From Phaeosaccion multiseriatum (Eukaryota > Protista > Ochrophyta, other classes): DNA of 64,000 bases. Of the stretch, positions 4,012 to 18,910 are shown piece by piece. The stretch is from the NCBI GenBank assembly GCA_965112735.1, contig OZ218954.1, positions 3,844,001-3,908,000 on the forward strand. The letters run 5' to 3'. Made by a program: the position numbers and the translations under genes. The stretch's first letter is position 1. Each line of letters starts with the position of its first letter. The notes under the pieces were generated by a model, which saw only the letters and a list, made by a program, of their open reading frames with translations, did not search any database and was not told the DNA's origin.

Positions 4012-4924
4012 GGGAAGGAGGAGGCCGCGAAGTAGTGAAGCAGTGACGCATTGAAGTAGTGAAGCAGTGAAGGAGTGAAGCATGAAGCACTGGCGCAGCC
4101 AAGGAGTAAAGAGTGAAGCAATAAGGGGGAGGGAATCACGCAGGCCGACTACCCCTCTAAGCGGAGAAGCAGTGAAGCAGTGAAGCAGTGAAGCAGTGAA
4201 GGAGCGAAGGAGGCGCTGCACACACGAGAAGGAATGTACCGAGACGTGGAGTGGAGTGGAGTGGAGTGTAGTGATGTGATGTGGAACACCGCGGAGCCTC
4301 CCTCCCAGGGCGTCTCTGCGGTCTATGCGTCTGCTGCCATCCCCTGTGGACAGCGGAGAGAGCGCTAGAGGGAAGTCCGTGTGCTGTCTCGACTCTCTCG
4401 GCGGAGGGGCCGCAGCAGCAAGGAGCAGCAGCAAGGAGCAGCATCGCTCGCATCATTGGTAAGATAATCGGGCATTGAAACATTGAAACGGGGGTTCGAG
4501 GCACCAGTCAGGAGGGGGGGTTAGCAAGTGCTACGACAAAATTATATCATGTATAATCTACGTAGTAGTATGTAAGGGAGGGAGGGGGGGGAGGGCATTG
4601 GCATGTGCATGAAGTAAATAGACAGAGAGGAGTCTTTCGGACCTTTATTATAATACATCGTGTGATAAATTATTTGATATTTTGACATTTTTCCCTCGCG
4701 GTACCCCTACGACGCCCGACCCCTTCCCATGCCCGCAGTCTCGTGCATCCTTACTCACAGGGGGGGGGGGGCAATCAGGGAGGCCCAATCAGGGTGGCCC
4801 AATCAGGCTCTCGCCAATATCGACCTCTACAGGGCGTGTCGAGCATCTCGATGTGGACTCTGGGTCTCTAAATATAAATATATACACGGCGGTGTTGAAA
4901 CCCCCATACCGTGTAAATACCGTG

Positions 4925-9633: not shown

Positions 9634-10444
9634 CGAGCGGCGTGGGACGGCGGTGGCTGGCAGGGTCGGCTCGGCTCTCGTTTCTCTGGCGTCCAAGTCA
9701 GTGGCCTCCAAGTAAGTCACTAGGCAGGGGCCGTCGGCGGCCAGAAGCGAGAGACCAGGAGGTCTGCCACCAGCTTGAAAGAATCCACAAGCCAGCAGTC
9801 CCAACAACCCCCTTCGTGGCAGGGTCTTGCCGAGGGTCTTGCCGAGGGTCGCCATTTAGGACAGCTCAGCACACCCCAGCCACTGAGAGATGTGACCAGA
9901 GCAGCCTATCTCGAACCGCGCAGAGGGCACTTGGAGGGACGGAGGAGCGGTAGGTGACATGGGCTAGCTAGTCTGGCAAGGGAGGCAGTTACGGCAATTC
10001 TTTCTCTTTGAAATTGATAATCACCTAAGAAACTGAAAGTGTGATTGTGGGTGTGTGCGTGTGTGTGTGATAGGGGCCGTATGTCACTGAAGCTCTGTAT
10101 CACCACCACGTGAGGTTGAAGTTGGAATGTCCAAGCAGGGAAAAAACTTAAAAACGCAATGCTGCGGTGTGAGTAGGCTCAGAGGAGGAAGCTGGGCTAC
10201 ATGTATAATACTTGTACATCAGTGAGGTCCGGAACCTGAAGCGGGAGTAGCGAAATATGCCTCAACAACTTCTCTCCTTGTTCCGGATGTTGGGAATGAT
10301 CGTGATTTATAGCCCTTTCCCCCTTCTTACCCTACACCGGCTTATACCGACGCGAAGTGGTCCTCACTCTCACCCCCCCTCCCAATCCCTCTGTCTCTTG
10401 TCTCCCTCTCTCACATAAACTCCAACGAAACAAAAGAAAGAGTG

Positions 10445-13108
10445 ATGAGGCATTGCGAAAGGAAGGGGGGGAAAGTAGCGGCAGCAGCAGCAGTTTTACT
10501 CTGCAACCAAAGCCAAAGCTTCGTCGTACCCACTGCTCTCACAGCAGCACCGAGAAGCAGGAGCAGCGTGGGTGTAAGGAGACATGGCGGTCGCAGCAGC
10601 AGCAGCAGTAGTAGCAGAACTAGGAGCAGCTTGCTGGGCAGGGGGGTTCAGCCGCATTCCGTGGCTCAAGGGTGGCGGCAGCTGGCCCTTCCACGGCAAG
10701 GCCCTGGTGAGAGCAACTTTGCACCAACATCAGTACTGTCCTGTATTTGCCCCTCACTCACTCCCCTTACTCCTGATTTAACAGCGACAGTGGCTCACGC
10801 CGGAGCCGATCCGAAGGGCCTTCCTCCGGACAGCCTCGATCTAAAGGAAGCAGTTGATAAGGACCTCGTCAGGGTGCTGCTGCTGGGAGAGGTGGGTGGG
10901 GCGAGAGGGGGGCGGAGATTGTTGGGTAGGAACCGAACGGAAGACAGAAGGCAGGGAGCGAGGGGGGGAGAGACAGTCGACCCAGACGCTGCTTGTGAGC
11001 CTGTTCCTTGTTTCAGCAGTCCATCCCTTGTGTCTGTCTGGCGTCTCAACAGGTGCTCGTGTTGGCGGCGGCGGTGGTGTTGGCTGCCAATCTGAACATC
11101 AAACTCGTGCAGGACACTCTTCAGGGCCTCTCTGAAACGCAGGACGTGCTCGTTGGACTGGCTGGTGGTGTCCCGCCCTTCCTCGCCAGGTTGGACGTCT
11201 AGACAGCCCCCTCCAGTTTCTCTTTCTCTCCCTCTCCCTCTCACTCTCCTCCCTCTTCTCCTTTCTCTCCGTTGTCTCTCTTTCGTCCGTATTTTACTCA
11301 CGACCTACCGCTTTGTCTCCCTCCATCGCTGTCCTCCCCTCCCCGAATGCGTCCCTCTGCCCCCCCCGGCTGTCTTAATCCCTATTACGCATTTCCTCCC
11401 CTACCCACCGCAGTGCTGTGCTGGAGGCGTCCCGAGTGGGCTTCTTCAAGGAAATCGATCAGGTGCGGCAGAGAAGGGGACACGAAACTGAGACTGAAAC
11501 TGATCTGAGTGGGTCGTTGTATGGGGCTGGCTGACGAAGCTGAAAGGGGTGGGGGGTAAGCAGCAGTGGCAGTGAGTCGTCTCGCCTATGCTTCCCCTCC
11601 TTACCCCTCCTTCCGGTGGACAGGATACGCGGCTGTACGTGCTGCGGGTCTTCGGCTACGGGCAAACCTTCCCCCGCTTGCTGGCGCCGGCCTTGGGCCT
11701 CGCCGTCGTGGCTGGCGTGTGCGAGGAGACATTCTTCCGCGGTGTGCTACTCCACGCCCTGCTGCCCGTCGTCGGACCGCTGCTCGCGCTGGTGCTCTCC
11801 AGCCTGGCCTTTGGCTTTGCGCACACGCCCGTGCCGGGTGGGTGGGTGGGTGGGTGGGTGGGTGGTTACCTACGGCTAACAGACACCCATGATTGAAGGC
11901 CCTGCCCCCCTCCCTGCCCCCCTCAGGTGCGAGTGCCTATGTGGAGGTAGTGTACGGCGCGGTGTTCGGCCTCGTGTACCTCTCCACAGGTGGCAACCTC
12001 GCCGCTGCCATGGCCGCCCACGTATGCTTTGATCTTCTCACCTTCCTCGAGGTGCGTCGCACTGTCCCGCTTCCTTCCTTCTTTCCTTCCTTCGTGTAGG
12101 CCGGGCCGGAGCGAAGGAAGGGCGAGGGAGTGTTGCCCAGGGTCCATTGCTGCCCAATGCACCACCCGACTGTCTCCTCCACTCCTCTGCTGTGAAGGAG
12201 CGCACATTCGGGACCGCTTTCCAACTTCGGCCTACCCCCCCCCCCCCCTCAGGTGCACTACCGAGCGAGCTCGCGCCTGTCTGACTCCCTGGCGCTGCTG
12301 CAGGAGCGCGTGGAGAGGGATTCGGCGCCCGCACCGCTGCCCTCGAGAGTCGAGGTGAACAAGCGCCTGAGGGACATGGACAGGGCCTTCCGCCTCAAGC
12401 CGGGCTTCTTTGACATGGTGCGAAGGGCGGCAGGGGCGGTGGGGTAGGTTTTGTTAAGTGGATGGGTGTCAGTCAGTAGCAAAAGTACGACTCTTAACAG
12501 CATGGTGCTTTAGCCTACATGGTGCAATAGCCTACCGCATCTCATACTTCGTACCATATCGCCTGCAGAGACTGGAAGTGCATGAAGCAGCGATCGCTCC
12601 GTTGTCTCCTCTCCTTTTCCGTTACCGAGTCTTTCTCCCCTCTCTCCCCTTCTCCCTTCCGCCCTCCCCTCTTCTGTCCGCAGGCCAGGGCCGTCTTCGA
12701 ACAGGTCAGGAGCAGTGTGCGTGCGTGCGTGCGTGCGTGTGTGTGTGCATGTGTATGTGCGTGTATGCGTGTGTGTGAGAGAGAGAGTGTGTGTGCCTGT
12801 GTATATGCGAGCGAGAGATTTGATAGCTTACTGACTGCTACCTTCGCCTCCTTGTCATCTGCGCCTGTCGCCCATTCTTCTTCTCTCCTCTCTTTCTGCT
12901 TCAGCTGGACATGGACGGCAACGGAGGCATTGACATGCGAGAGCTGCAGTTGGGCATTCGCACCTTCGGAGCCTTCATGCCTGGCGACGACGTGGTGGCC
13001 CTGATGGGGAGGGCAGACCTTGATCGCAACGGACAGATCGACTTGTCTGAGTTCGTGCGGCTGCTCATCATCAACGCCAAAGACGTGGAGGCGCAGAAGC
13101 TGGAGTAG
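10445..13108 (+). CDS. CPBP/Abi (CAAX protease-like) intramembrane protease fused to a C-terminal EF-hand pair, paralogue A
   Basis: Exons 10445-10706, 10785-10891, 11053-11189, 11414-11462, 11624-11837, 11927-12051, 12253-12417, 12684-12704 (21-nt micro-exon), 12905-13108. CPBP motifs CEETFFRG, AFGFAH, AHVCFD; EF loops DMDGNGGIDMRE and DLDRNGQIDLSE. Confidence 0.85.
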
Positions 13109-14542
13109 CAGGGGCAGCCTTGGGTGATGCAGCAGGAGGAGGAGCAGGAGGAGAAGGAGAACTGGGCGGGCTCTTGATCAAAGAAGAGATGAGATGGCAA
13201 GATAGACCGGCGAGGGAGACAGGCGGCCGACAGAGGGTGAGGCGGTGATTTGCGAGAGGTGCTTGCTCACGGCTGCCGACCACCAGGAGGGCCTTCGGAA
13301 GCTGAAAGGAGGTTCACTTGACGAGGGTGTTGCAAGGCGGGTAAGCACGGCTTCGAGCATCCCCGCCCGAGCAGCAAAGAGAGAAGAGAACTCATTGAGA
13401 CTGGCGGGGCGTGGGGAAGTGTCGCACCTTAGCAGATCCCCCTTCGCAGGTCCTGTGATGGGGAGTGGTTCATGCTCCCGGGATGTAAAAAGTGACACAT
13501 GCAAAGGACCTTCCTCTTGATTGCAGTGGGTGCTACTCAGGTCAGGCAGTGCTCGCAAGTAAGACAATCAAGCGAGACCTTTATTGTTTATTCCAGCTGT
13601 TGTTGCCTTCAGACAGGCTACATTGCCCACAGAGAGGACATATGCCAGCTGTTGCCTTCAGAGAGGAGGGGGAGGTTTTTCTGGCGTGGCGAACCATAGG
13701 CCTTCCAAGTGGGGATGTCGGTACAGACATGGACGTCATTTGTGTTGCCTTCAGATAGGCTACACATCTTTCATCATCTTACCGTATCCAGTCCGTGCGA
13801 GGTACCCCCTCGTGGCTGTCGCCTCTGCGTCACTCTGCCTCGCGCATCTCTCCTAGCTACCCCAGCGCGGGCCAATCCCGCCCCTCGACGCCACCCTCCC
13901 CTCCCCTACTACTTCTCATGGGGCGGGCCGCAGTGATGACCGCGAGGGCTTCCGGTTTGGGTTCGTGTGGGTGCTTTTGCTGGAGAGGATGTCAGCTCCC
14001 GAGGTCGTATCCCCCTCCGTCTCGTCAGTCCTCCCCATCGAGCGATGCACAGTTGATACCAGCCATATCTCGTGCTGGGCCCTCTGGAGCGCCACCCTGC
14101 ACCACACTGCACACTGCCAAGCCTCACCCGCCCCCGGGGGCAAGCCGGGGAAGCCCCCGAAATTTGACCGCCTTTGTGAGTCCAAGAATATATTACCACC
14201 ACGTGGGGTTGAAGACAGAGTTGAGGGTTATACATTAGGAAAAGAGAAAAGAGAGGCGCTCGGTGCAGAGTTGTGAGTGGGCTCAGAGCGAGGTGGCTCA
14301 ACTACAGGTACAAATACATCAGTGAGGTCTGGGACCCGCAGCGGGAACGAGCTTGTACATTCCTCAACTTGTTTCGTTGTGTTCCGCCCGGACGGCAATT
14401 GGCTTGACATTATAAATCCCTTCCCTTCCCTCCAACGCAGACACTCTTCCCTGTCAGAAGCTCCTTGTTAAGATGGATTGTTTCTCATTTCCCCTCCCAC
14501 TCCCATGGCCCTCTCTCGGTATCAGGAGAGAGAACGAAACAT

Positions 14543-17216
14543 ATGCCGCGATTGTCAGCAGTGCTGCGTGCGGCAGCAGCAGCAGCAGCAGTCCTACTCT
14601 GCAGCCAAAGCGTCAGCCAACGAGTGATGGGCTTCGTCGTACCCACCGCTCTCACAGCAGCAAGAACGAGCAGGAGCAACATGCGTGTAGGGCTGAGACA
14701 TGGCGGCAGTAGCAGCAGCTTGGTGGGCAGCAGAGGGGCGCAGCAGCAGCTGTCACAGCAGCTGGCCCGTCCAAGGGCAGATCCTGGTGAGAACATCGCT
14801 TTTAGTTTTAAAAACGACTTCAGAAACTAACCCTCACAGCCCGAACCCCTCATTCGACAGCGACGGTGGCTCACGCCGCAGTCGGTCCTAAGGGCCCTCC
14901 CCCGGACAGCCTCGCTCTGCTGGAAGGAGTTGACAAGGGCCTCGTCAGGGTGCTGCTGCTGGGAGAGGTGGGTTGGGCGAGAGTGGGGCGGAGATTGTTG
15001 GGTAGGAACGGAACGGAAGACAGAAGGTGGAGAGCGAGGGGGGGAGAGAGTCGACCCAGACGCTGCTTGTGAGCCTGTTCCTTGTTTCAGCAGTCCTGCC
15101 CTCCCCCCCCCCCTTGGTGTTCTGCTCAGGCGCTCGTGTTGGCGGTGGCGGTGGTGTTGGCTGCCCTCCTGCGCATCAACCTCGTGCAGGACACTCTGCA
15201 GGGCCTCTCTGAAGGGCAGGACGTGCTCGTTGGACTGGCTGGTGGTGTCCCGCCCTTCCTCGCCAGGTTGGACGTCTAGACAGCCCCCTCCAGTTTCTCT
15301 TTCTCTCCCTCTCCCTCTCCCTCTCCCTCTTCTCCCTCTTCTCCTTTCTCTCCGCTGTCTCTCTTTTGTCTGTCTTGTACATCACCACCTACCATCCGTC
15401 TCGCTCCATCGCTGTCCTCCCCTCCCCGAATGCGTCCCTCTGCCCCCCCCGGCTGTCTTAATCCCTATTACGCGTGTCCTCTCCTACCCACCGCAGCGCT
15501 GTGCTGGAGGCGTCCCGAGTGGGCTTCTTCAAGGAAATCGATCAGGTGCGGCAGAGAAGGGGCCACGAAACTGAGACTGAAACTGATCTGAGTGGGTCGT
15601 TGTATGGGGCTGGCTGACGAAGCGGACAGAGGTGGGGGGGTAAGCAGCAGTGGCAGTGAGTCGTCTCGCCTATGCTTCCCCTCCTTACCCCCTCCTTCCG
15701 GTGGACAGGATACGCGGCTGTACGTGCTGCGGGTCTTCGGCTACGGGCAAACCTTCCCCCGCTTGCTGGCGCCGGCCTTGGGCCTCGCCGTCGCGGCTGG
15801 CGTGTGCGAGGAGATACTCTTCCGCGGTGTGCTACTCCAAGCCCTGCTGCCCGTCGTCGGATCGCTACCCGCGCTGGCGCTCACCAGCCTGGCCTTTGGC
15901 TTTGCGCACACGCCCGTGCCTGGTGGGTGTGTGGGTGGGTGGGTGTGTGGGTGGTTGCCTACGGCTAACAGACACCCATGATTGAAGGCCCTGCCCCCCT
16001 CCCTGCCCCCCTCAGGTGCGAGTGCCTATGTGGAGGTAGTGTACGGCGCGGTGTTCGGCCTCGTGTACCTCTCCACAGGTGGCAACGTCGCCGCGGCCAT
16101 GGCCGCCCACGTGTGTTACGATCTTCTCACCTTCCTCGAGGTGCGTCGCACTGTCCCGCTTCCTTCCTTCGTGTAGGCCGGGCCCGAGCGAGGGGAGGGC
16201 GAGGGAGTGTTGCCCAGGGTCCACTGCTACCCAATGCACCACCCAACTCTCTCCTCCACTCCTCTGCTGTGAAAGAGCGCACATTCGGGACCGCTTTCCA
16301 ACTTCGGCCTACCCCCCCCCCCCCCCCTCAGGTGCACTACCGAGCGAGCTTGCGCCTGTCTGACTCCCTGGCGCTGCTGCAGGAGCGCGTAGAGAGGGCT
16401 TCGGTGCCCGCACCGCTGCCCTCGAGAGTCGAGGTGAACAAGCGCCTGAGGGACATGGACAGGGCCTTCCGCCTCAAGCCGGGCTTCCTTGACATGGTGC
16501 GAAGGGCGGCATGGTAGTGGGGTAGGTGTGGTGCTAGAGATTACATGGTGTTATTGCCTACCGCATCTCATACCACATAGCGCATCTTATACCACATCGC
16601 CTGCAGAGACTGGAAGTGCATGAATGAAGCAGCGATCGCTCCGTTGTCTCCTCTCCTTTTCCGTTACCGAGTCTGTCTCCCCCCTCCCCCCCCCTCCCTT
16701 CCGCCCTCCCCTCTTCTGTCCGCAGGCCAGGGCCGTCTTCGAACAGGTCAGGAGCAGTGTGTGTGTGTGCATGTGTATGTGTGTGAATCCGTGTGTGTGT
16801 GAGAGAGTGTGTGTGCCTGTGTATATGCGAGCGAGAGAGTTGATAGCTTACTGACTGCATTCCTAACCTTCGCCTGCCTTGTCATCTGCACCGATCGCCC
16901 ATTCTTCTTCTCTCCTCTCTTTCTGCTTCAGCTGGACATGGACGGCAACGGAGGCATTGACATGCGAGAGCTGCAGTTGGGCATTCGCACCTTCGGAGCC
17001 TTCATGTCTGACGACGACGTGGTGGCCCTGATGGGGAGGGCAGACCTTGATCGCAACGGACAGATCGACTTGTCTGAGTTCGTGCGGCTGCTCATCATCA
17101 ACGCCAAAGACTTGGAGGCGCAGAAGCTGGAGCAGCAGGGGCAGCCGTTGGTGGTACAACAGCAGGAGCAGCAGGAGGAGGAGCAGGAGGAGGAGGAGAA
17201 CAAGGCGGGCGCTTGA
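14543..17216 (+). CDS. CPBP/Abi intramembrane protease fused to an EF-hand pair, paralogue B
   Basis: Same 9-exon structure as paralogue A; CEEILFRG, AFGFAH, AHVCYD; identical EF loops; retains a Q/E-rich tail. N-terminus [34 protein letters not shown]. Confidence 0.87.
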
Positions 17217-17722
17217 TCGAGGGAGAGAGAGTGAGACAGACCGGCGAGGGAGACAGGCGGCCGAGAGAGGGAGTGTAGCGGTGGTTTGCGAGACGTACTT
17301 ACCGACGGCTGCCGACCACCAGGAGGGCCTTCGGAAGCTGAGTGGAGTTTCACTTGACGAGGGTGTTGCAAGGCGGGTAAACACGGCTTCCAGCATCCCC
17401 GCCCGAGCCGCAAAGAGAGAAGAGAACTCATTGAGACGGGCGGGGCGTGGGGAAGTGTCACACCTTAGCAGATCCCCCCCGCAGGTCCTGTGGGGAGTGG
17501 TTCACGCTCCCGGGATGTAAAAAGTGATACATTTATATAGTATATATAGTACAGGACCTTCCCTACTCAGGTCAGGCAGTGCTGCGCAAGTAAGACAATC
17601 AAGCAAAGTATTTATTCCCTCTACCGTGTCCCGTCCGTGCGAGTTACACCCTCGTGGCTGTCGCCTCTGCGTCAACCGGCCCCGTCCGTGCGAGTTACCC
17701 CAGCGCGGACCCCTCCCCCCTC

Positions 17723-18810
<1,088 letters not shown>

Positions 18811-18820
<10 letters not shown>

Positions 18821-18910
18821 CTGTGCGCTCCTGGCCCTGTTTGTGCTACTCAGAGGTGGAACGCACCGCCTCTGCTGCTCGGTTCATTCTGCGTGTACCG
18901 GAGCGCATTC
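18811..18910 (-). mobile_element. Dispersed repeat ending in a (CAGA)n tail (putative SINE/non-LTR 3' end), copy 1
   Basis: tgtgcgctc..ctgtttgtgctactcagaggtggaacgcaccgcctctgctgctcg..cattctg matches the reverse complement of 63849-63950; both copies abut TCTG/CAGA repeats. Confidence 0.55.

Follow-up and report, generated by a model that had tools for sequence, protein, structure and literature searches.

A 64,000-nucleotide stretch of the genome of the ochrophyte alga Phaeosaccion multiseriatum (assembly GCA_965112735.1, contig OZ218954.1, positions 3,844,001 to 3,908,000; the window, in whose numbering all its positions are given) carries two head-to-tail copies of one nine-exon gene, which joins an intact CPBP (Rce1/Abi-type) membrane-protease core to a C-terminal pair of EF-hands. 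We propose that the copies are recent tandem paralogues of a family confined to heterokont (ochrophyte) algae and that they encode a plastid CPBP protease whose activity or access would be switched by calcium binding to the EF-hand pair; to this joint reading we give about an even chance. We report the gene structure and domain content, show how far the fusion and its key residues are conserved, and describe the modelled fold of a relative, P0009.

Gene structure and domain content of the two copies

Three-frame translation and inspection of splice sites placed both copies on the forward strand. Copy 1 (10445–13108) runs from an ATG at 10445 to a TAG at 13106–13108 and has 427 codons plus stop; copy 2 (14543–17216) runs from an ATG at 14543 to a TGA at 17214–17216 and has 448 codons plus stop. 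All 16 introns of the two copies are bounded by GT and AG, their acceptors are pyrimidine-rich, and the reading phases agree. Intron 1 measures 78 nt in copy 1; in copy 2 its length is 74 nt, and there it is closed to in-frame read-through.

The exons were searched singly and not as the joined spliced protein, and scores were read against the curated Pfam cut-offs (22.4 bits for PF02517, 25.4 for EF-hand_1, 25.9 for EF-hand_5 and 30 for EF-hand_7). Exon 5 (11624–11837 in copy 1, 15709–15922 in copy 2) matched positions 4–54 of PF02517 (Rce1-like, CPBP) with 45.2 bits in copy 1 and contains CPBP motif 1, EExxxR, as EETFFR in copy 1 and EEILFR in copy 2, together with motif 2, FxxxH, as FGFAH in both. 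Exon 6 (11927–12051, 16016–16140) matched profile positions 64–92 with 22.5 bits in copy 1 and supplies motif 3, HxxxN/D, as HVCFD in copy 1 and as HVCYD, with the family-invariant Tyr retained, in copy 2. Bacterial CPBP models of NCBIfam were matched below threshold only. The core qualifies as a genuine CPBP domain; the protein as a whole is not Rce1 proper.

Ahead of these motifs, exon 1 of copy 1 (10445–10706, donor GTGAGA) holds the start codon, the hydrophobic stretch VAAAAAVLLC, the sequence SQS|FVVP and a Ser/Arg-rich (S/R-rich) segment of 58 residues, and exon 1 of copy 2 (14543–14786) encodes a diverged leader that also contains FVVP. Exon 2 (10785–10891, 14861–14967) begins the mature protein, with LVRVLLLGE in copy 1 resembling LVRTLVQGE of relatives. 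Membrane helices 1 and 2 come from exon 3 (11053–11189, 15130–15266), which in copy 1 is colinear with residues 37–66 of the Tribonema protein P0003. Exon 4 (11414–11462, 15497–15545) encodes in copy 1 the positively charged peripheral helix AVLEASRVGFFKEIDQ, with 60% identity to residues 142–156 of the Ectocarpus protein P0104.

Behind the core, a K/R-rich helical linker encoded by exon 7 (12253–12417, 16332–16496) leads to the EF pair. Exon 8 (12684–12704, 16726–16746) is a 21-nt micro-exon, the same at 21 of 21 bases in the two copies, whose product ARAVFEQ forms the entering helix of EF-hand 1. Exon 9 (12905–13108, 16932–17216) encodes in both copies the 12-residue loops DMDGNGGIDMRE and DLDRNGQIDLSE, which are canonical: positions 1, 3 and 5 hold acidic or amide ligands, position 6 is Gly and position 12 is Glu. 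Copy 1 then stops at its TAG, and copy 2 carries in addition a 27-residue Q/E-rich tail. On exon 9, EF-hand_1 scored 34.2 bits and EF-hand_5 36.7 bits, with two stretches apiece; the pair model EF-hand_7, searched without the micro-exon, reached 28.8 bits, slightly below its cut-off.

An initial annotation, made by reading the letters of the window, had listed intact CPBP motifs, a helical linker, two canonical EF loops of 12 residues, the micro-exon, an N-terminal hydrophobic stretch with FVVP and an S/R-rich segment, and a tandem duplicate. Every one of these elements was present where it had been placed: all three motifs in both copies, the linker and the loops in exons 7 and 9, the N-terminal features in the leader, and the duplicate as two nine-exon copies with a period of ~4.1 kb.

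The micro-exon is borne out by homology as well as by its splice signals. In blastp comparisons, exon 4 aligned with residues 142–156 of P0104, exon 5 with 157–227, exon 6 with 229–269, exon 7 with 270–312 and exon 9 with 320–376, all colinear. In both P0104 and P0003 the matches to exons 7 and 9 are separated by exactly 7 residues; in P0104 these are residues 313–319, SYGIFQQ, which correspond to ARAVFEQ, and the Phe they share is family-invariant (F268 in P0003 numbering). The intron ahead of the micro-exon occupies the same position in Tribonema (FVKN|AIGVFGM), at the junction of linker and entering helix. The intron behind it is present in neither Tribonema nor Ectocarpus; the micro-exon thus arose through an intron specific to the Phaeosaccion lineage.

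The fusion can also be followed in P0009, which comes from a brown-algal relative and has 77% identity to the Ectocarpus protein. P0009 is one unbroken frame with both domains on three contigs of ~2.2 kb, each from a separate sequencing run, whereas the Ectocarpus gene spans 6.8 kb and is split by introns into at least 7 coding blocks. The P0009 contigs are therefore most likely spliced transcripts that include both domains, and in this relative the two domains appear to lie on one mRNA. Taken together with the colinearity of the exons and the same order of domains across the family, these sequence comparisons confirm that the CPBP core and the EF-hand pair are fused in a single real gene, as the initial annotation had held, and that the fusion is not an artefact of the gene model.

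Family conservation, leader sequences and fold

A phmmer search of 1.84 billion representative proteins with exon 5 gave 83 matches. The top matches with full query coverage were proteins of 270–426 amino acids that proceed, like the Phaeosaccion protein, from a CPBP core through a linker to one or two EF loops, and the full-length relatives all matched PF02517 (best E-value 6.8e-29). Named members among the matches listed are Tribonema minus, Phaeothamnion confervicola, Mallomonas annulata, Ectocarpus, Pylaiella, Scytosiphon, Choristocarpus and Chrysoparadoxa; one MMETSP transcript and many environmental sequences are also members. Judged by these matches, the proteins form a family of heterokont (ochrophyte) algae that spans several classes and in which the architecture recurs. 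Public records of the family carry automatic names only; the Tribonema minus protein KAG5185288.1, for example, is called 'CAAX protease self-immunity-domain-containing protein'.

Full-text literature searches found no paper describing a CPBP plus EF-hand architecture. A fold search of the atlas (clusters of at least 50 members) matched the core to a bacterial CPBP cluster and returned no large cluster with the fused architecture, a negative of little weight at that cluster size; a search of the protein atlas returned a sub-threshold EF-hand cluster only. The module had been put forward as a candidate for an undescribed one, with the proviso that it might prove to be both common and characterised. 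The first part stands in so far as no published description was found, but the architecture is already in public protein sets; it is recurrent in heterokont algae and yet uncharacterised.

Conservation was scored on a 12-sequence family alignment in P0003 numbering. When the hydrophobic exon-3 fragment was added to the family alignment used to compare the two copies with relatives, mafft misplaced it, and its rows were disregarded. Eight residues of the CPBP part are invariant in the 12 sequences (E129, E130, R134, F158, H162, H198, Y201 and D202), as are three of the EF part, F268 in the entering helix and D272 and E283, which are positions 1 and 12 of EF loop 1. Positions 1 and 12 of EF loop 2 (D308 and E319) are at least 90% conserved. 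The invariant catalytic residues of the CPBP core and the conserved EF positions 1 and 12 point to an active enzyme and to calcium binding under selection. As a separate observation, the second coding exon of the Tribonema minus gene (JAFCMP010000135.1) has a near-duplicate close by (4111–4203, 4372–4437), with 91% identity over 22 residues.

Heterokont plastid leaders consist of a signal peptide, an aromatic residue (usually Phe) at position +1 and then a hydroxylated, basic, acid-poor segment that resembles a transit peptide; a Phe after the hydrophobic stretch, followed by an acid-free segment, is typical of leaders directed to the stroma of complex red-type plastids. The leader of copy 1 reads MRHCERKGGK, VAAAAAVLLC and NQSQS|FVVP, and then continues for 58 Ser/Arg-rich residues with 0 acidic ones. 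In copy 2 an Arg-containing segment, longer by five residues, precedes the same FVVP. Brown-algal relatives have a hydrophobic stretch and then Phe (TLFVSP, NAFVPS, MTFVPP); the upstream parts of the transcript-like contigs read TVLFIAPS and AAPFIQP, and other clades have AEA|F, AKA|F and CQS|F. Judged by eye, both copies and the relatives appear to follow the two-part heterokont pattern, with a short hydrophobic stretch. The leader is probably a signal peptide with a transit-peptide-like segment for import into the complex plastid.

Structure prediction, which the initial annotation had named as a check, was run on the relative P0009 and not on the window protein, with AlphaFold2 and a 26-sequence family alignment. 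The model has a mean predicted local distance difference test score (pLDDT) of 91.1 and a predicted template modelling score (pTM) of 0.86. Its helices cover residues 7–30, 43–65, 69–86, 92–126, 128–141, 151–167 and 173–202, and behind them come two short helices of the linker and then the EF pair. A wide structural search recovered the CPBP membrane fold: residues 7–194 matched SpdC (6u0o_A) with a Z-score of 12.7 over 170 aligned residues, and residues 1–193 matched residues 34–241 of MmRce1 (4cad_C) with a Z-score of 9.6 over 165 residues. In a Foldseek search of the Protein Data Bank (PDB) with the same model, calmodulin-like matches filled the list and no CPBP match was shown; calmodulins also dominated when the family profile was searched against PDB sequences.

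MmRce1 has 8 membrane helices and 2 peripheral ones, with lumenal termini and a conical catalytic cavity that is open on the cytosolic side (PMC5874806). Helices 1 and 8 of MmRce1 have no equivalents in the algal model, which would place both ends of the algal protein on the side of the cavity mouth. The charge distribution suggests the same orientation independently of the fold comparison: Lys plus Arg average 4.2 in segment 66–91 and 5.2 in the linker behind the membrane domain (196–226), and they are almost absent (~0) from loops 31–42, 124–129 and 168–172, on the other face. On both grounds we infer that six helices cross the membrane and one lies peripherally, that the two termini are on the cytoplasm-equivalent side, and that the EF pair shares its face with the mouth of the catalytic cavity.

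Proposed calcium switch and rival explanations

We propose the following course of events. The leader would carry the protein into the complex plastid, where the core, a putative glutamic intramembrane protease of the CPBP (Rce1/Abi) type in which the catalytic set is complete, would reside in a membrane. In the thylakoid or the inner envelope, if that is its site, the face that bears the EF pair would look onto the stroma. The linker directly past the last catalytic helix would hold a single pair of canonical EF-hands, similar to one lobe of calmodulin, and calcium binding may shift the seating of this pair against the linker or the cavity mouth. Such a shift would switch substrate access or activity, as in the rhomboid Rho4. 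Calcium gating, proteolysis and a plastid site, which the initial annotation had proposed, are plausible in view of the conserved residues, the leader Phe and the predicted same-face topology. It is possible, if rather doubtful, that the family represents the first glutamic (CPBP-class) intramembrane protease to be directly switched by calcium, one that would turn stromal transients into cleavage of membrane substrates in complex red-type plastids and would be an independent plastid counterpart of calcium-activated rhomboid signalling.

Several points weigh against the proposed switch. The hydrophobic stretch of the leader is only ~10 residues long, and five additional residues precede the Phe in copy 2. 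The orientation and the place of the EF pair were deduced from the aligned ranges of the model, from the description of MmRce1 in a review and from the positive-inside rule. At least one copy may be under relaxed constraint, as suggested by the rate ratio and the Phe for Tyr in copy 1 given below. Several CPBP proteins act without catalysis, among them CflP, Abx1, SpdC with SagB, and the plant BCM proteins (PMC7083845).

The last point leads to the main rival, a calcium-dependent scaffold or regulator in which the CPBP core would bind another membrane protein as its partner, with the EF pair modulating this binding and no cleavage taking place. This explanation would fit the behaviour of several relatives. 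CflP associates with CovS and works independently of its conserved catalytic residues, and its case means that conserved residues alone are no proof of catalysis. SpdC, the best structural match of the P0009 model, was crystallised as a partner of the hydrolase SagB, according to the title of entry 6u0o, and for the plant BCM proteins a post-translational role in coordinating chlorophyll metabolism is described (PMC7083845). Set against these precedents, 12 divergent members share the Glu-Glu pair, the Arg, the two His and the Asp without exception, and both copies keep them intact, as would be expected of an active enzyme; we consider a pure scaffold unlikely. The other explanations, concerning the state of copy 1 and the location of the protein, are lesser rivals.

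The second explanation is that copy 1 has been decaying since the duplication and that copy 2 alone keeps the ancestral function. The duplication as a whole covers 10100–17590 on the forward strand and consists of two units, roughly 10100–13560 and 14190–17590, each of which includes ~340 bp 5' of the gene and ~450 bp 3' of it. Between the copies, exons 2–9 are 87–100% identical and introns 2–8 ~94% identical (93–98% where these exons and introns are given together), and the divergence of exon 1 and intron 1 is far above that of the rest of the gene. Over exons 2–9 the synonymous divergence (dS) is 0.054 and the nonsynonymous divergence (dN) 0.049, with a dN/dS of 0.90, so that the copies appear young and to have diverged at near-neutral rates. 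This ratio would suit decay, as would the derived residues of copy 1: Phe in motif 3, where Tyr stands in copy 2 and in all 25 relatives with a residue at that place; the Thr of EETFFR; a Leu in place of the Pro usual in LPAL; and a His where Gln is usual. In addition, the TAG of copy 1 corresponds to a CAG in copy 2 (17133–17135), and the frame behind it stays open for 22 more codons to a TGA at 13175–13177, parallel to the tail of copy 2; the stop of copy 1 is therefore probably a recent nonsense change that trimmed the Q/E-rich tail. A short tail is nonetheless normal, as relatives stop soon past the second EF-hand, and copy 2 is derived as well, for example in a Val for the common Leu in exon 6. 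Neither copy is broken: the frame of copy 1 is free of shifts and internal stops, every splice site is preserved, and no catalytic or calcium-binding residue is missing. We consider decay of copy 1 slightly less likely than a pure scaffold.

Further features of the locus and the genome were observed. These two copies of the fusion gene are the only ones in the whole genome (67 Mb, 22 contigs), which also contains ~3 more distant CPBP (PF02517) genes, at C5:1755462–1756001, C8:2637465–2637584 and C14:1074800–1075269. A block with a CACGTG core, ACCACCACGTG[A/G]GGTTGAAG, lies ~330 bp upstream of the start codon of both copies, at 10108–10130 and 14197–14219; it is conserved within otherwise poorly conserved 5' flanks and may be a promoter element. 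Introns 8 (12715–12802, 16757–16822) and 5 (11836–11865, 15922–15954) have GT/GC-rich and GGGT microsatellites just past their donors, of unequal length in the two copies. Directly 3' of copy 2, at 17723–18824, is a very long and pure tetranucleotide microsatellite, (GTCT) repeated ~275 times with 98% matches, which accounts for the extreme AT skew of that interval.

A third explanation accepts the fusion and places it elsewhere, in the endoplasmic reticulum (ER), the outer plastid membranes or the periplastid space, where the EF pair would sense calcium of the cytosolic type. The shortness of the hydrophobic stretch and the longer Arg-containing segment before the Phe of copy 2 would be compatible with such a site. 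A Phe nonetheless stands right after the hydrophobic stretch in relatives from at least five algal classes, copy 1 runs for 58 residues past FVVP without an acidic one, and plastids are known to contain other CPBP proteins with a cyanobacterial origin (PMC7542359), so that we regard a location outside the stroma-facing membranes as quite improbable. The remaining explanation, that the EF-hand exons belong to a separate transcript and were joined to the core by the gene model, has a very remote chance in view of the exact colinearity with relatives, the 7-residue micro-exon included, the intron position shared with Tribonema at the junction of linker and entering helix, the single frame of P0009 on short contigs, and the same arrangement in both tandem copies.

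The proposed plastid protease would bear on a wider question. To our knowledge, few molecules are known to read plastid calcium signals, and the number is smaller again for complex-plastid algae, for example the kelps and related groups. The family offers a concrete entry point, with a defined EF domain, defined catalytic residues and orthologues in the brown-alga model Ectocarpus, and it provides a testable candidate link from plastid calcium signals to protein cleavage. For plastid CPBP proteases, substrates and regulation are unknown even where the protein is essential, as with AMR4 of the malaria parasite (PMC7542359). Should calcium control prove true, regulation of intramembrane proteolysis by EF-hands would have been invented a second time, independently, in this family.

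Comparison with known systems

Rce1 (MmRce1, PDB 4CAD) shares with the algal protein the three CPBP motifs, the fold and the glutamic set of Glu, two His and Asn/Asp. It differs in that the algal protein lacks equivalents of helices 1 and 8, has Asp for Asn in motif 3, and carries a putative plastid-type leader and a C-terminal EF pair, whereas Rce1 is ER-resident. The P0009 model has six membrane helices and one peripheral helix against the eight membrane helices of Rce1, and the algal protein shows no sign of prenylated CAAX substrates.

Among bacterial proteins, SpdC (PDB 6U0O) is the best structural match and has a compact core of similar size. Unlike the algal protein, SpdC, Abx1 and CflP have no EF-hand domain, and many bacterial CPBP proteins are non-catalytic partners of membrane proteins; CflP responds to Mg2+ through its own abundance and not through a binding domain.

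Within plastids, SCO4 of Arabidopsis, AMR4 of Plasmodium and BCM1 and BCM2 of plants resemble the algal family as CPBP membrane proteins; they are imported into primary or complex plastids, as the algal protein would be. SCO4 and AMR4 are plastid CPBP proteins of cyanobacterial descent, and the function of AMR4, whose substrate is unknown, needs the catalytic Glu (PMC7542359). In contrast to the algal family, an EF-hand has not been reported for SCO4, AMR4, BCM1 or BCM2.

The closest functional logic is that of the rhomboids. Rho4 of Drosophila, a rhomboid with EF-hands, is activated by calcium, with gating of the substrate according to the title of Baker and Urban 2015 (cited via PMC13597478). 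Rho4 and the mammalian RHBDL1 and RHBDL3 are intramembrane proteases fused to EF-hands on the cytosolic side (PMC13597478). The fold and catalytic class are unrelated, since these rhomboids are serine proteases and the CPBP core belongs to the glutamic class. The EF-hands of Rho4, RHBDL1 and RHBDL3, which are proteins of the animal secretory pathway, are N-terminal, whereas those of the algal protein are C-terminal and accompany a putative plastid-type leader.

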